Notes under the pieces: model-generated
Seen by the model: the letters and a program-made list of their open reading frames with translations, nothing else
What the model was told of the DNA's origin: nothing
Databases searched by the model: none
Shown here: positions 55,931-64,000 of the stretch, piece by piece
Numbering within the stretch: position 1 is the stretch's first letter
Layout of the letters: each line of letters begins with the position of its first letter
Position numbers and translations under genes: made by a program
DNA from: Blepharisma stoltei ATCC 30299
Lineage: Eukaryota; Protista; Ciliophora
Assembly (NCBI GenBank): GCA_965603825.1
Contig: CBFDEM010000032.1
Coordinates: 682,001-746,000, forward strand
DNA: 64,000 bases
Direction: 5' to 3'

Positions 55931-56149
55931 CATTTTTGAAGCGCTGTCCGCTTAAAATATTTATTGAATCAATCATTATAATTTTTTTTATGTAAAATAA
56001 GAGATATTAATTTGCTGCAGATTCTTCAATTTTTAATAATTTATTTACTTCTCTCAATAATATTAGCAAAATTAACCTCAAAGTCCCTATCATCATACAT
56101 TTTATGCATACAATAGAAATCAATAAAAAATAATAATTTAGACTAATTA

Positions 56150-56774
56150 AACGTTTGCTGGCTCTAAACTTGCGGCTTTACTTTTATTCAGCATTTCAGG
56201 AGTATTTTGCATATTACTTTTATCTAGACATGACCCGCATATTTCTGTAAAGAAGGATCTATTTAGACTCTCTAACTTTTGATTGAATACATTAAAGAGC
56301 TTTGCACCGTTGTATCAATCTCTGCTGGCTGTTGTCATCAATTTTACTTTCTCAATAGCTTCTTGAGGCTGTAAACTCAATAACCCTAAAATTGGATCTT
56401 GTTCTGACTTTAATAATTTAGAAGCTTGGGAAATTTTTGCAATGAGGTCCTTTATTTCATCTAAGTAGCAATCCAACTTGGTGAAATCTCCTAAATCTTT
56501 CTCTGAATTAGGAAGACGCTGGCGAAAGGAATCTATAATTTTTCTTCTCAACTCGCTAAATTTTGATTTTTCTTTTGCAAGGAATTCAAGAATTGCTTCT
56601 TTTGTCCCTTCACAAGGCTGCATAAACATTGATTCAAGATTATGAGCTCTATTAGGTAAGTTTACATGCTGCCCAATATGCTCTTCGCACAATAAAGTTT
56701 CAGGAGAAGAGCATTTTGCATGAATGCCCAGCCTCGTTCTTACACCCTGGCACGAAACATTTCTTCACCATCAT
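56150..56774 (-). pseudogene. Copy A of the Zn-finger/Kelch-like/TPR gene: 5' fragment only, frameshifted
   Basis: Near-identical to 59451-60074, but with a 1-bp insertion (GCATTTTGCA versus GCATTTGCA near 56714) and abrupt loss of homology at ~56150. Confidence 0.85.
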
Positions 56775-56922
56775 ATAACAATTATTAGATATCTAATTTT
56801 GTAAAGCTATATGCATTCTAATACTTTTTTCAAATAACTCAGTTTAATATATAGATGGCGCTCTGATAATCATTCGTTTGGAAACATAAAGCTACATTCC
56901 GAAAAATTTGAGGGGAGAATAT

Positions 56923-57020
56923 TACGATTCCATTAAAAGTTTGAAACAAAAAATTCAAGATACTGAAGGAAATACATCTCAAATGATTTATATAATTATT
57001 ATAATGATGACTTATTAGAA
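56923..57020 (+). pseudogene. Possible decayed ubiquitin-like fragment
   Basis: YDSIKSLKQKIQDTEG resembles ubiquitin SDTIENVKAKIQDKEG; short and frame-broken. Confidence 0.35.
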
Positions 57021-57032
57021 TCAAATTTTATT

Positions 57033-60000
57033 CTAAATATGCATTTTTTGGAGTAGCTCAATACGGTCTCGGTCTAATGTGTCGTTAATAAAATTGATAT
57101 CCTCCTTAGAAAGTTTCCATTCATCCCCAGTGAAAACACCACTTACTTGATTTTCTTGCTTCAAATTATAAGCCCTATTAAAGTCCTGCAAAGCTGCTTC
57201 TTCTTGTCTGAGACTATTAAATACTCTAGCTCGGCTGCAAAAATGCAAAGGATTATTGGGTGCAAGTTCGATTGCCTCATTATAGCATTCTATTGCTACT
57301 TGATATCTCTCTAAAGCATAAAGATTATTGCCTTTACGATTATAAAACCTGGCCTTATTTGGTTTGATTTGGATCGCTTTTTCATAGCTTTCTACTGCTT
57401 CTGAGTATCTTTCTAATTTATTTAAAGCATATCCTTTCCAAGAGTAAATATCAGCATCGTCTGGATTGAGTTTGATTGCTTCGTCATAGCATTCGATTGC
57501 TTCTAGATATCTTTTTAGATTAGACAAAGCAATGCCTTTATTATTGTAAAAGGTAGCATTTTTTGGATTGAGTTTGATAGCTTCATCATAGCATTCGATT
57601 GCTTCTAGATATCTTTCTAAATTATAAAAAGCGTCGCCTTTGTTATTGTAAAAGGTAGCAATTTTTGGATTGAGTTTGATTGCTTCGTCAGAGCATTCGA
57701 TTGCTTCTAGATATCTTTCTAAATTATAAAAAGCGTCGCCTTTATTATTGTAAAATTTAGCAGCTTTTGGATCGAGTTTGATTGCTTCATCATAGCATTC
57801 GATTGCTTCTAGATATCTTTCTAAATCAAACAAAGCTTTGCCTTTATTATTGTAAAAGGTAGCATTTTTTGGATCGAGTTTGATTGCTTCGTCATAGCAT
57901 TCGATTGCCTCTAGATATCTTTCTAAATCAGACAAAGCGTTGCCTTTATTATTGTAAAATTTAGTATCTTTTGGATTGAGTTTGATTGCTTCATCGTAGC
58001 ATTCGATTGCTTCTAGATATCTTTCTGAATAAGACAAAGCATTGCCTTTATAATTGTAAAAAGTATCACTGTTTGGATTAAGTTTGATTGCTTCATCATA
58101 GCATTCGATTGCTTCTAGATATCTTTCTAAATCAAACAAAGCGAATCCTTTATTATTGTAAAAGCTAGCATTTTTTGGATCGAGTTTGATTGTTTCGTTA
58201 TAGCGTTCAATTTGTTTTAATTTTTCTCCTAAAGTCTTTAGAGTATTGCCTTTTAGACTTCATTTATCCAGACAATTAGAATCAAGCTTAAAATTGATAT
58301 TGCATTTTATTACTTCAATCTTTTTACCTACTCTTCTAAGTGCGACATGCGTGTCATAGTAAGCAATATCAATAATGATTTTTTGATCTAAACTAAAAAA
58401 ATAATATTCTTCAGCCGATACAGAACTATTTGAGATGTATATTCCTCCTTTATTATATGAACAAAACACTTGATCATCATTGTAATTGACTTTTGATTCT
58501 GCTATTCTTCTCCAATTCGAGTAACTTCCAATTTCGCTTTCATAGATTGATCCAGGGCATTCAATCAAATAGAGTCTCTCTGCATTTATCAGGATCTTTC
58601 TTCCCCACTCTTCAAACTCATAAGGAATTGTCGAGAAAGAGTCAATATCAATTGAGTATAACCAAAGATTTCTACTCTTATATCCAGAAATCAAAATATT
58701 TCCATTAAATATTATACTAGAGCAAGAGTAATCAGCTTCTGGCATTGGAGTTAATTTAACTCATCGATTTTGATTCAAATCGAATCTACTAGACAGAACC
58801 AAATCACAATCATAATCACCTTCATATATTCCTCCAAAGCAATAGACGCTGTTTTTGAAATAGATACATGATGAGCAATAGTAAGGAGTTCCTGATGGCA
58901 GCACTTCGACTCCATCATCCACATCAATTAGCACTGTAATTCCAGAAAGGTTATGATTACCAAAACAGAATAGTTTGCCATTTGGAAGTTGGGTTATGCA
59001 AGTAGAATCGTCTAGTGGTTCTGGAGTCTGCAAGGTTTTGACTTCTTGGGTTTCAGTTTCAGTGTTATAAATAATTAAATTAGTTCTCTTGCTTCCTTTA
59101 TCTCATATAATATTATAAAGAGATATTTTTAGTTGATAAGCTTTGAGATAATCTTGGTAGGCTTGCATTAGTGGTGGATCATAAAGACTAGAATTGGCCT
59201 GAATTGCTGAGCAAGTTGTTCTGAGATCTATCTCTAATTCTCGATTATTCGGTCTACTCAAAATCTCAGCTGTTTTATTTCTTAAGGTATCTATGATACT
59301 TAAAGCACTTTCTGTTTCCTTGGATTTACTGTTGAGATAATTAGAAACAGCCCTTATGTGAGAATTAAGCAACCTTATTGGCTTGTTTGCGTTTTCAGAT
59401 TTTTTTAAAATCTCAAAGTTCTCATTTATTATCAAAAAATTCGAATCCTTAACGTTTGCTGGCTCTAAACTTGCGGCTTTACTTTTATTCAGCATTTCAG
59501 GAGTATTTTGCATATTACTTTTATCTAGATATGCCCCGCATATTTCTGTAAAGAAGGATCTATTTAGACTCTCTAACTTTTGATTGAATACATTAAAGAG
59601 CTTTGCACCGTTGTATCAATCTCTGCTGGCTGTTGTCATCAATTTTACTTTCTCAATAGCTTCTTGAGGCTGTAAACTCAATAATCCTAAATTTGGGTTT
59701 ATTTCTGACTTTAATAATTTTGAAGTTTGGGAAATTTTTGCAATTAAGTCATTTATTTCATCTAAGTAGCAACCCAGCTTGGTGAAATCTCCTAAGTCTT
59801 TCTCTGAATTAGGAAGACACTGGCGAAAGGAATCTATAATTTTTCTTCTCAACTCGCTAAATTTTGACTTTTCTTTTGCAAGGAATCCAAGAATTACTTC
59901 TTTTGTCCCTTCACAAGGCTGCATAAAAATAGATTCAAGAGTATGAGCTCTATCAGGTAAGTTTACATGCTCCCCGATATGCTCTTCGCACAATAAAATC

Positions 60001-60074
60001 TCAGGAGAAGAGCATTTGCATGAATGCCCAGCCTCGTTCATACACCCTGGCACGACACATTTCTTCACCATCAT
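57033..60074 (-). CDS. Copy B (intact, 1013 aa): Cys/His Zn finger (B-box-like), helical region, Kelch-like propeller and ~11 TPRs
   Basis: Five track ORFs lie in one frame joined by TGA(Trp); stop TAG at 57033. CxxxxC..CxC..CxxHxxxH..H; KLFCFG, VYCFGG, NRW.KLTPMP; TPR consensus YNNKG.AL..LERY.EAIECYDEAIKL.P. Confidence 0.85.
57471..58184 (-). repeat. Seven near-identical 102-bp tandem units encoding TPRs (copy B)
   Basis: Exact 102-bp period, with the TTTGAT anchor at 57471 and 58185. Confidence 0.9.
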
Positions 60075-60379
60075 ATGAATAATTATTAGATATCTACTTT
60101 AATCAGAGGGAGGTAATTGTTTTTTAAATTCTTTATAGTACCACTGAAGTGCTATTGTTTTATTAGCAGATAGTGCTTATCTCTCTTTACAGCCTTAAAT
60201 CTATCAAACATAAAAAACCACTATATTGCTATTTATAAATTGAAAGAGCTGCCATAAATTATTTTTATCAAGATTTTTTCTCTTCTATGAAATCTAAAAT
60301 AGCTTTAATATAAGATTTAAGAAGACTAAATTGCTATCAACAAGCATAATAACAAATTCATAAAAAATCTAAACACTAT

Positions 60380-61077
60380 TTAATTCCTTGTAACAGGCTT
60401 TGGCTTCTGACTCGATGTAGGTGTCCTTGAGATTTCAAATTTGGCATAGACTGAGTATTTTGTCTCTTATCTAGCGCTTTATTTTGCTTTCATATACCCA
60501 AATTCACTTGGAAGCCTATAGCTCCCAGGCCCTGGAGTGTTCCAAAACCCTGAGGTTGGAGACGAATCTCTATTAGAGATCGGGAAAGCTCTGTTCCCTG
60601 TAGGCTGAAATTTCGACAAATAATACCCAGACTTCAAGAAATCTTCACTATTATAGTAAGCGCCACAACCAGGCAGTCAATTTTTTTGATCTTCGGAAAC
60701 CTTGGCGATGATAGTGGTGAAAAAGTCGTAATTCCTGCATTTTTAAAAGCGCTTAAACTGTATCTGCCTTTTTCAACCTCACTTTTAGGGTCATAAGCAC
60801 CTGGACCAGGACTTTTTCGGCTGCTAGACATTTCATCTGCTTGCAATTACCTAAAATTGATGTGCGAGGCCTGAATGTGAATTTCCTTCCTCCCTGTCCT
60901 ATCTTTGAAGTAATTGGATAAGTTCCTGAACTAGGAACTGAAGGGTCTGCTTTAAAGTGGCCTTCTACATACCTTTTTTCATAGGCTTCACGAGAAATCC
61001 CAAACGAGTAGGCTAGCCAAAAGGCTTTTGCTATCAAAGTCACTTGATAAATTATAAGCACTTGTGTCTGGGTTTCC
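60380..61077 (-). pseudogene. SHIPPO/ODF3-type (PGPGxY repeat) gene fragment with several frameshifts
   Basis: YSFGISREAY, SPGPGAYD, PGCGAY and TPGPGSYRLPSEFG fall in different frames. The 5' end is cut at the boundary of the copy C cassette. Intron remnant at 60837-60850. Confidence 0.72.
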
Positions 61078-61140
61078 TTATTTGAAAAAAGGATTAGAAT
61101 GCATATGGCTTTAAAAAACTAGATATCTAATAATTATTAT

Positions 61141-64000
61141 ATGATGGCGAAGAAATGTTTCGTGCCAGGGTGTATGAATGAGGCTGGGTATGCATGCAAA
61201 TGCTCTTCTCCTGAGATTTTATTATGCGAAGAGCATATCGGGGAGCATGTAAACTTATCTAACAGAGCTCATAATCTTGAATCAATGTTTATGCAGCCTT
61301 GTGAAGGGACAAAAGAAGCAATTCTTGAATTCCTTGCAAAAGAAAAGTCAAAATTTAGCGAGTTGAGAAGAAAAATTATAGATTCCTTTCGCCCGCGTCT
61401 TCCTAATCCAGAGAAAGATTTAGGAGGTTTCACCAAGTTGGATTGCTACTTAGATGAAATAAATGACTTCATTGCAAAAATTTCCCAAACTTCAAAATTA
61501 TTAAAATCAGAAGAAGATCCAATTTTAGGATTATTGAGTTTACAGCCTCAAGAAGCTATTGAGAAAATAAAATTAATGGCCACAGCCATCAGAGATTGAT
61601 GCAACGGTGCAAGGCTATTTATTATATTCAATCAAAAGTTAGAGAGTCTAAATAGATCATTCTTTACAGAAATATGCGGGGCATATCTAGATAAAAGTAA
61701 TATGCAAAATACTCCTGAAATGCTGAATAAAAGTAAAGCCGCAAGTGTAGAGCCAGCAAACGTTAAGGATTCGATTTCCTTGATAATAAATGAGAACTTT
61801 GAGAGTTTAAAAAAGTCTGAAAACGCAAATAAGCCAATAAGGCTGCTTAATTTTCAAATAAGCGCTGTTTCTAATTATCTCAACAATAAATCAATTGAAA
61901 CAGAAAGTGCTTTAAGCGTTATAGATACCTTAAGAAATAAAACAGCTGAGATTTTGAGTAGACCAAACAACTCAGAATTAGAGATAGATTTCAGAACAAC
62001 TTGTTCAACAATTAAGGCCAATTCTAGTCTTTATGATCCGCCACTAATTCAAGCTTACCAAGATTATCTCAAAGCTTATCAACTAAAAACATCTCTTTAT
62101 AATATTACAAGAGATAAAGGAAGCAGGAGAACATATTTAACTATTTATAACACTGAAACTGAAACCCAAGAAGTCAAAACCTTGCAGACTCCAGAACCAC
62201 TAGACGGTTCTACGTGCATAACTCAACTTCCAAATGGCAAGCTGTTCTGTTTTGGTAATAATACATCTTCAGGAATTACAGTGCTGATTGATGTGGATGG
62301 TGGAGCCGAAGTGCTGCCATCAGGAACAAAAAAATGGTATTTATTTTTTATAATTTAGTAGCACCCATCTGGAACTCCTTGCAAACGCTCATCATGTATC
62401 TATTTCAACAACAGCGTCTATTGCTTTGGAGGAGCACATAAAGATTATTTAACTCTATCGAGTAGATTTGATTTGGATCAAAATCGATGAATTAAATTAA
62501 CTCCAATGCCAGAAGGTGATTGCTATTGCTCTAGTATAATATTTAATGGAAATATTTTGATTTCTGGAAAATTTAGTAGAAATCTTTGGTTATACTCAAT
62601 TGATATTGACTCTTTCTCGACAATTCCTTATGAGTTTAAATATAATAAAAGAAAGATCCTGATAAATGCAGAGAGACTCTATTTGATTGAATGCCCTGGA
62701 TCAATCTATGAAAGCGAAATTGGAAGTTACTCGAATTGGAGAAGAATAGCAGAATCAGAAATCAATTCTGATTTAGTGTTTAGTTCATATAATAAAGGAG
62801 GAATATACATCTCAAATATTTATGCATCGGATAAATATTATTTTTTTAATTTAGATCAAAAAATCATTATTAATATTGCTTACTATGATAGGAATATCGC
62901 ACTTAGAAGAGTAGGTAAAAAGATTGAAGTAATAAATTGCAATGTCAATTTTAAGCTTGATTCTAATTATCTGGATGAATGAAGTCTAAAAGGCAATACT
63001 CTAAAGACTTTAGGAGAAAAATTAGAAAAAATCAAATACTGTGACGAATTCATCAAACTCAATCCAAACAATCCTATTTATTACAATAATAAAGGCTGCG
63101 CTTTTAATGATTTAAAAAGATATCTAGAAGCAATCGAATGCTATGACGAAGCAATCAAACTCGATCCAAACAATCCTATTTGTTACTGTAATAAAGGATT
63201 CGCTTTGCTTGATTTAGAAAGATATCTAGAAGCAATCGAATGCTATGAAGAAGCAATTAAACTCAATCCAAACGATGCTATTTATTACTATAATAAAAGC
63301 AACGCTTTGTTTTATTTAAAAAGATATCTAGAAGCAACCGAATGCTATGAAGAAGCAATTAAACTCAATCCAAACGATGCTATTTGTTACTATAATAAAG
63401 GCAGCGCTTTGTTTTATTTAAAAAGATATCTAGAAGCAATCGAATGTTATGACGAAGCAATCAAACTCAATCCAAACGATGCTATTTATTACTACAATAA
63501 AGGCAATGCTTTGTCTTATTTAAAAAGATATCTAGAAGCAGTCGAATGCTTTAACGAAGCAATTAAACTCAATCCAGACCATGCTAATGTTTACTATTAT
63601 AAAGGATATTCTTTAAATAAATTAGGAAGATACTCAGAAGCACTAGAAAGCTATGAAAAAGCAATTAAAATCAATCCAAATAATGCATATTTTTATAATT
63701 GTAAAGGCGATACTCTTTATGCTTTAGAGAGATATCAGGAAGCAATGCAATGCTATAATAAGGCAATCGAACTTGTACCCAATAATCCTTTGTATTTTTG
63801 CAGCCGAGCTAGAGTATTTAATAGTCTCAGACAAGAAGAAGCAGCTTTGCAGGACTTTAATAGGGCTTATAATTTGAAGCAAGAAAATGAAGTAAGTGGT
63901 GTTTTCACTGGGGATGAATGGAACCTTTCTGAGGAGGGTATCAAGTTTATTAACGACGTATTAGGCCGAGACCGTATTGAACTACTCCAAAAAATGCATA
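61141..64000 (+). pseudogene. Copy C of the Zn-finger/Kelch-like/TPR gene, interrupted by a 48-bp stop-containing insertion; ends a few nt beyond the window
   Basis: Colinear with copy B with TGA=Trp. The only lesion I found is the in-frame insertion near 62328-62375 carrying TAG TAG. Functional status is uncertain. Confidence 0.65.
63055..63564 (+). repeat. Five near-identical 102-bp tandem units encoding TPRs (copy C)
   Basis: AAACTC anchor at 63055, 63157, 63259, 63361, 63463 and 63565. Confidence 0.9.

Follow-up and report, generated by a model that had tools for sequence, protein, structure and literature searches.

Constrained scaffold and diversified groove in a Blepharisma stoltei family of finger-Kelch-TPR genes, a candidate variable recognition repertoire

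The window analyzed here is a stretch of 64,000 nt of Blepharisma stoltei ATCC 30299 DNA (contig CBFDEM010000032.1), and from position 56150 to its end it carries part of a cluster of related genes. A species-restricted multigene family is represented in this cluster by the intact gene B (57033-60074, minus strand) and by decaying members, the other copies A, C and D-F. B has an uninterrupted coding sequence of 1013 codons, with the ATG at 60074 and a TAG stop at 57033-57035. It encodes a two-zinc finger predicted to be B-box-like, a coiled-coil region, a Kelch propeller and an array of TPR units. The residues that line the groove of this array evolve at or above the neutral rate, and the scaffold that carries them is sharply constrained. 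With moderate confidence, we read these genes as a B. stoltei family in which a constrained scaffold bears a diversified groove, making it a candidate variable recognition repertoire.

Units and groove residues of the TPR array

All gene copies were read with UGA as Trp, the full-length translation of B was made by script, and Pfam scans of B were run on the pieces between its in-frame TGA codons. TPR_1 (PF00515) matched B in nine stretches with E=1.9e-83 (271.6 bits against a cut-off of 27.8). The consensus residues G8, A20, A27 and P32 are kept in the units, and the unit numbering is in register with Pfam TPR_1. In B, a fixed N-terminal cap unit (aa 602-635, 58170-58271, minus strand throughout), which has the same place in most paralogs, is followed by seven core units of 102 nt or 34 aa (aa 636-873, 57456-58169) that form the variable groove. 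Three fixed C-terminal units conserved across paralogs (aa 874-975, 57150-57455) then lead into a conserved tail (aa 976-1013, 57036-57149) ending in ...DRIELLQKMHI, which is common to the intact paralogs and to the kinase-headed gene P0099. On the plus strand, copy C has five core units (63073-63582), located by tandem repeats and the unit profile, and then the first two fixed C-terminal units (63583-63786), located by the unit profile. This profile bears out the seven and five units counted in B and C by a first-pass annotation made from the letters of the window. In Tandem Repeats Finder, 9.3 copies of a 102-nt repeat span 57265-58212 (82% matches) and 7.2 copies span 63023-63756 (83% matches).

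Units extracted with the profile from about 25 paralogs are arranged in the same order in all of them: fixed cap, 0-9 core units, fixed C-terminal units and conserved tail. The core units have the form xxxYxxKGxAFxxLxRYLEAIECYDEAIKLNPxx, and there are 7 in B, 5 in C, about 4 in D, about 9 in E and about 5 in F. Their number differs even between neighboring genes that are 86-91% identical. The nearest neighbor of a unit lay within its own array in 19 cases against 2.9 expected, 14 of these 19 being adjacent units, and the remaining nearest neighbors were found out of register in neighboring genes. This is the pattern expected from tandem unit duplication and unequal exchange, in agreement with the unit reshuffling proposed in the first-pass annotation. 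The units had also been called near-identical, which overstates their likeness: pairwise DNA identity in B is 84-93%, and unit-to-unit protein identity averages 79% for B, 74% for C and 55-75% across 20 further arrays. Identity is unevenly spread along the core units of B, with 94% in framework codons and 74% in variable codons.

Among 76 core units, the variable positions are 1, 2, 3, 5, 6, 9, 12, 13, 33 and 34, and positions 4, 7, 8, 16-23, 27-30 and 32 hardly change. Helix B, described earlier as almost invariant, indeed shows zero or near-zero non-synonymous change at positions 16-22 and 27-30. The residues listed in the first-pass annotation for positions 9, 12 and 13 are all correct, and these positions are hypervariable as claimed, but they are not the only ones, since positions 1, 2, 3, 5, 6, 33 and 34 vary as much. 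According to Magliery and Regan, positions 2, 5, 9, 12, 13, 33 and 34 are the most variable across TPRs at large and line the concave ligand-binding face (PMC1261162). The pattern of positions is thus ordinary for a TPR, and it is the rate of change that needs testing.

Rates were estimated with three custom tests: tree-based counting against a pooled synonymous rate, a per-site likelihood with a shared synonymous rate, and a comparison of reciprocal-nearest pairs. A per-site binomial test of non-synonymous against same-site synonymous change is powerless because Asn-type codons have few synonymous sites, and the pooled synonymous rate was used instead. With tree-based counting, the ratio of non-synonymous to synonymous change (omega) at the ten variable positions of 23 cluster units was 2.47 (p=3e-6), against 0.46 for the scaffold. 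For the whole family, the ten variable positions gave 1.57, and scaffold values were 0.39-0.46 across both sets. The concave set of positions defined in the literature (2, 5, 9, 12, 13, 33 and 34) gave 1.83 (p=2e-11) in 93 units, the set obtained after nine further loci were added.

For positions 9, 12 and 13, where an omega above 1 had been predicted, the pooled value in the family without the whole window cluster was 1.57 (p=8e-4). Taken singly, sites 9 and 12 conform to the prediction, and site 13 is not significantly above 1. In the per-site likelihood, omega was above 1 at sites 2 and 9 in each of two non-overlapping sets, the cluster and the remainder of the family; at site 12 it was above 1 in the cluster, and at sites 1 and 3 in the remainder. 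Sites 5, 6, 13, 31, 33 and 34 fit an omega of about 1, and the scaffold was strongly below 1. The most conservative test, with 17 independent reciprocal-nearest pairs, still gave 1.47 (p=0.04) for the variable positions and 0.52 for the scaffold. As a control, positions 9, 12 and 13 of the fixed C-terminal units were compared among paralogs; the first of these units had an omega of 1.04 and the second one of 0.48. Groove changes go on between the most recent unit duplicates. The earlier claim that variability sits on concave-face positions over a scaffold under purifying selection is borne out by these rates, and there is good evidence for an excess of non-synonymous change at sites 2, 9 and 12.

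Several points weigh against a groove diversified by selection. Variability at positions that are the most variable in TPRs generally (PMC1261162) is in itself ordinary. Synonymous change is about 1.3-1.5 times higher at the variable codons, and with a local synonymous rate the family omega becomes about 1.2 (76 units) or 1.5 (93 units). The likelihood fit on the 23 cluster units drifted between iterations (scale 0.76 to 0.54), and ranges are therefore quoted. The trees were built from the same 102 nt under an assumption of no recombination. The data of the rate tests include broken copies, and part of the signal may be neutral decay because five of the six cluster copies are broken. Finally, internal identity is below that of fungal NLR arrays, where units must exceed 85% protein identity over a stretch of 100 residues or more (PMC4986451); the arrays fall short of it, and the fungal-NLR-type repeat conservation claimed in the first-pass annotation does not hold.

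Much of this would also be seen if a telomere-adjacent, decaying family merely churned neutrally. The variable sites would then be the least constrained part of the TPR surface, gene conversion would keep the scaffold alike, and there would be neither selection for diversity nor a repertoire. The six sites that fit an omega of about 1, the modest family omega under the local rate, and the broken cluster copies, which public annotation fragments, are in line with such churning. It does not readily explain why omega is above 1 at sites 2 and 9 in each of two data sets that do not overlap, why the young cluster keeps an omega of about 2.3-2.9 even with the local rate, or why the excess persists in the independent pairs. 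Moreover, the scaffold, the N-terminal domain and the fixed units are under clear purifying selection, which suggests that many copies are or were functional, and about ten genes of the family are full-length and open. We consider neutral churning unlikely, though it deserves serious weight, and retain the reading of a constrained scaffold with a diversified groove.

Head, propeller and gene copies of the cluster

The N-terminal finger of B (aa 1-51, 59922-60074, minus strand) has the putative zinc ligands C6, C11, C19, C21, C29, H32, H36 and H44, each of them either invariant or conserved to at least 90% across 54 aligned family members. An AlphaFold2 (AF2) model of B's own N-terminal domain, made without zinc, has a pLDDT of 90.8 and shows a small zinc knuckle of beta-beta-alpha form that leads into a helix of 60 residues. 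An all-against-all structural search ranked the COL2 B-box first for the domain (Z 6.6, root-mean-square deviation 1.7 A over 46 residues). This search was dominated by long helices, and the only two non-helix rows were the B-boxes of COL2 and CYLD (Z 6.2), both with middling scores. The top Foldseek matches, all weak, were the PML and TRIM39 B-boxes along with ZZ fingers, and RING-like fingers were matched as well; the PML B1-box had a probability of 0.82 but E=0.37, and no match of the model reached E <=0.001. At the sequence level, Pfam gave no meaningful family and no zf-B_box match for the N-terminal 152 residues of B or for the 54 members, one of which had a weak ANCHR-like B-box match (E=0.0018). 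A profile search of PDB sequences with the domain gave nothing significant, the best being the TRIM63 coiled coil (E=0.01). A THAP finger, suggested by the CxVPGC start, was rejected because the Cys-to-Cys/His spacing is far too short.

The following region (aa 52-324, 59103-59921) was assigned as coiled-coil or helical from AF2 secondary structure and matches no Pfam family. The model has a 60-residue helix at aa 57-116 and then shorter helices (pLDDT about 90), and the structural matches are coiled coils. Among 17 paralogs, omega is 0.3-0.6 up to about aa 310 and higher beyond. The models thus point to a TRIM-like head, a B-box-like finger with a coiled coil, that has no RING and no detectable sequence homology. 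The TRIM-like character proposed in the first-pass annotation is supported by the predicted B-box-like fold and the coiled coil. A RING is not present: Pfam found no match, and the protein begins with a single finger at residue 6. Absence of both a RING and a Pfam B-box match in the scans counts among the points against a receptor of this kind.

Residues 325-601 (58272-59102, minus strand) form a predicted six-bladed Kelch beta-propeller, as judged from a paralog's Pfam match and an AF2 fold. In B itself, split into pieces at the TGA codons, Kelch motif scores remained below the Pfam cut-off (best E=0.0012). The paralog P0001 exceeded the cut-offs for Kelch_6 (27.9 against 25.3) and Kelch_1 (23.7 against 20.1). 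The propeller was modeled on this paralog, which is about 66% identical to B, and not on B itself. The model of P0001:300-645 has a pLDDT of 88.8 and a pTM of 0.85, and Foldseek matched it to KLHL3, KLHL20, KEAP1 and K13 with E 1e-13 to 1e-11 and target TM-scores of 0.70-0.75. Omega among 17 paralogs is 1.0-1.4 in loop stretches of the propeller against 0.2-0.5 in strands. Since no hydrophobic segment was found in the protein, it is probably soluble.

The window is AT-rich (about 33% G+C). The source genome of 41.46 Mb in 64 contigs is macronuclear (MAC) DNA in which UGA encodes Trp; the published somatic genome of B. stoltei has 41 Mb in 64 telomere-to-telomere contigs, UGA as Trp, and introns of 15-16 nt (PMC9942806). 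Gene B contains four in-frame TGA (Trp) codons, starting at 59618, 59105, 58763 and 58262, and the one at 58763 is the invariant Kelch Trp of the family alignment.

The first-pass annotation described three paralogs: A truncated, B intact and C inverted. This holds, except that C is not intact, and the cluster continues with three more copies, D, E and F, past the window end. Copy A (56150-56774, minus strand) is a 5' fragment of a family gene, about codons 1-208, truncated at 56150 and 94.8% identical to the first 650 nt of B. Its frameshift, read directly from the sequence, is due to one extra base in the homopolymer run 56714-56717. Copy C (61141-64000, plus strand, running a few codons past the window end) is a paralog of B with 86.5% nucleotide identity. 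At 62328-62375 it has a 48-nt AT-rich insertion, with the 11-nt direct repeat CCATC(A/T)GGAAC on both sides, that introduces two in-frame stops (TAG TAG, 62356-62361), which were masked for translation. Public annotation covers only the downstream part of C, as a 499-aa gene. Copies D, E and F are all frameshifted or truncated, and public annotation splits them into fragment genes. The copies are mosaic, the first 650 nt of A and F being 93-95% identical to B and the remainder of F about 86%.

The insertion in C was also considered as an intron and rejected: its GT..AG candidates, of 22 or 25 nt, would break the frame and do not fit the 15-16 nt introns of the species. Contigs from four runs contained no spliced joint across it. 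One contig of run X4 tracks C over 62256-62327 and then departs for its last 9 letters; this hints at an insertion-free form or a paralog, 9 letters being too few for a conclusion. The end of A and an interruption of about 98 nt in F (L031:7378-7475) fall at the same codon, after ...EPANV (aa 207), and the sequence past the junction is homologous in both copies (window 56050-56150; L031:7378-7475). Either the breakpoint is common to both copies, or the junction marks the border of an inserted element. Between B and C, an open frame on the minus strand (60379-60846) is rich in PGPGAY-like motifs that recall SHIPPO/STPGR repeats. Contigs of the four runs scarcely cover this frame, which is probably the remnant of a gene.

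The four runs belong to one study, are stored as contigs (about 32 Mb each) and contain about 20% of the words of the region. Contigs over 57036-63035 cover B and C, and the intergenic stretch 60036-60635 is empty in all four. Exact B-specific and C-specific contigs occur in each run, on segments whose next paralog reaches no more than 91-93% identity. Both B and the broken copy C therefore look transcribed, with the reservation, again to be set against the favored reading, that the runs are only guessed to be RNA.

The same contigs bear on the quality of the assembly. Tandem repeats and recent paralogs are difficult to assemble, and B and C, or their unit numbers, might represent mis-assembled versions of one locus, a situation that the first-pass annotation had raised in the form of misplaced haplotypes. 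Copy D lies at 746283 here and at about 980079 in the public record of 1,102,817 bp, and the two contig versions therefore differ by about 234 kb upstream of the cluster, an offset that could be taken in the same sense. We regard such an artefact as highly improbable. B and C have opposite orientations and a spacer of about 1 kb with unique sequence, and they are 13.5% different; each is matched exactly by its own contigs in four separate runs, with the next paralog at most 93% identical; and the strain is reported to be virtually homozygous, with a HiFi assembly (PMC9942806).

Family, telomeres and exchanged heads

A search of the B. stoltei genome with the N-terminal domain of B gave at least 150 matches. 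Among 1.84 billion representative proteins, the domain is found in only 70 clusters; every named one that was checked is from B. stoltei, and outside these there are a few weak, short metagenomic fragments. Likewise, a search with the first 620 residues of P0001 returned 35 proteins, all from B. stoltei. With its many members and many broken copies, this is the birth-and-death family that the first-pass annotation had supposed. No NACHT, NB-ARC or other NTPase was matched by Pfam in the pieces of B or in ten longer family members, as that annotation had stated for NACHT and NB-ARC.

The finger occurs with Kelch, with TPR or with both, heads and sensors being freely combined. In three paralogs a Ser/Thr kinase replaces the finger. 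In P0099, the protein kinase domain spans residues 13-268, and residues 286-926, comprising linker, propeller, cap, core units, fixed units and tail, align to P0001 with 55% identity. Loci with a close copy of the propeller segment of B are enriched near telomeres: of 30 such loci, 13 are situated at a distance of 2-6.6 kb from a contig end, where 4.6% would be expected (p=2.6e-10), and the five contig ends that were read all carry CCCTAACA telomere repeats. The window cluster itself is about 81 kb from its contig end. Neither the telomere enrichment nor the kinase-headed sister genes figured in the first-pass annotation.

Further loci differ in gene or array structure. At L068, a 657-aa kinase gene (P0100, 5873-7861) precedes a 717-aa TPR gene (P0084, 8001-10563) by 139 nt in the same orientation; a single kinase-propeller-TPR gene may have been divided here, through a lesion or in the annotation. 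A second tandem cluster at L066/L067 (CAJZBQ010000019.1, ~65-81 kb) has at least four family genes, of 719, 590, 583 and 671 aa, whose arrays miss one fixed C-terminal unit. A second TPR subfamily with a strict two-unit (204-nt) period is present at L051:5576-7140 and L068:2681-3500. In it, ADAYNGIG...RINPN and AIYYNNKGDALYELGRREEAMECYKEAIRIDPNN units alternate about seven times, helix-A residues are variable, and there are some stops.

The composition of the family would also suit ordinary adaptors, that is, scaffolds or substrate adaptors for the cell's own proteins in cortex, cilia or turnover, sub-functionalised so that each groove is fixed for an endogenous partner. TPR and Kelch domains are common protein-protein adaptors, KLHL proteins use their Kelch domains as substrate receptors, expanded families are numerous in ciliates, and unit positions correspond between close paralog pairs. 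A conserved housekeeping role would not predict restriction to B. stoltei, beyond which only weak fragments were found. Nor would it lead one to expect high gene turnover, altered unit number between 86-91% identical neighbors, telomere-adjacent placement, or groove changes that persist between the most recent unit duplicates. Such an adaptor family appears improbable to us, and we continue with the interpretation of a diversified recognition repertoire.

Proposed function and comparison with known systems

In the mechanism that we propose, local duplication, often beside telomeres, would create new genes, many of which later decay. Within a gene, the array would grow and shrink by tandem duplication and unequal exchange of 102-nt units. 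Selection would hold the helix-packing scaffold constant and let or drive change in the groove, most clearly at positions 2, 9 and 12 and also at 1, 3, 5, 6, 13, 33 and 34, as well as in some propeller loops. The most likely function of propeller and TPR array would be that of a joint binding module, with diversified specificities in the different paralogs. The head might pass on the signal, by self-assembly of B-box and coiled coil as in TRIM proteins, or through the Ser/Thr kinase in the sister genes. Ligand binding, oligomerisation and recognition of non-self or other fast-changing targets are what this scheme predicts, and the immune-like or ubiquitin-ligase role suggested in the first-pass annotation is a candidate role.

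A more far-reaching proposal, which we put forward tentatively and with some doubt, is that an early-branching ciliate has built an NLR-independent intracellular system of variable receptors. It would have two diversified surfaces in tandem, the Kelch loops and the TPR groove, and swappable heads (B-box with coiled coil, or Ser/Thr kinase), encoded by mostly telomere-adjacent genes that duplicate, exchange units and die. It could serve in the recognition of conspecific partners or of rapidly changing non-self, for example viruses, bacteria inside the cell, or factors from prey.

Animals, plants, fungi and brown algae have repeat receptors that diversify a binding face, and almost all of these receptors are based on an NTPase switch. 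Full-text literature searches (Blepharisma, ciliates, B-box/Kelch/TPR) found no published ciliate family of such design, and the B. stoltei genome paper makes no mention of these domains (PMC9942806). If the genes form a true recognition repertoire, they would represent an independent design that does without the NTPase switch, and they would offer a way to study how targets are distinguished by a large, free-living predatory cell. Even on a modest reading, they offer a clear case of repeat-array evolution beside ciliate telomeres.

Among known systems, fungal NLR (STAND) proteins with TPR, ANK or WD arrays (Dyrka et al. 2014, PMC4986451) share with the Blepharisma family swappable N-terminal modules on a common repeat sensor, variation in repeat number, birth-and-death gene dynamics, and variable or positively selected residues on the concave TPR face. 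The Blepharisma family differs in having no NACHT or NB-ARC NTPase, in the Kelch propeller that precedes the TPR array, in its 34-residue units and ciliate host, and in a unit identity of 79% at best compared with the 85% used for fungi. The NB-ARC-TPR and LRR-ROCO candidates of Ectocarpus (Zambounis et al. 2012, PMC3341825) also belong to a protist and are clustered, fast-turnover genes with shuffled repeat modules and site-specific positive selection. They are built around an NB-ARC or ROCO core, with each exon encoding a single repeat and shuffling by exon, whereas the Blepharisma array is intronless and the protein has no NTPase.

The BTB-Kelch proteins KLHL and KEAP1 have a six-bladed propeller of the same fold, and the variable loops of the Blepharisma propeller may face the substrate side. 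The Blepharisma family has no BTB or BACK domain but does have a TPR array, and sequence identity is 10-15%. TRIM proteins such as TRIM5alpha and TRIM22 resemble it in a B-box-like finger directly followed by a long coiled coil and in a C-terminal binding domain with fast-evolving patches; the SPRY loops of TRIM5alpha are positively selected. In contrast to TRIM proteins, there is no RING, hence no evident E3 activity, the finger fails Pfam zf-B_box, the sensor is Kelch plus TPR and not SPRY or NHL, and sequence homology was not detected.

The variable lymphocyte receptors of lampreys are LRR solenoids with fixed N- and C-terminal caps, a variable number of units and a variable concave face. 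The TPR array is likewise a capped solenoid with a variable count of consensus-like units and a variable concave face. The lamprey receptors are assembled somatically and are secreted or membrane-anchored, whereas the Blepharisma genes are germline paralogs encoding a probably soluble TPR protein. Because it has no NTPase, no RING and no sequence-level B-box, the Blepharisma family is a member of neither the NLR nor the classical TRIM proteins, and it falls with the diversifying repeat receptors.

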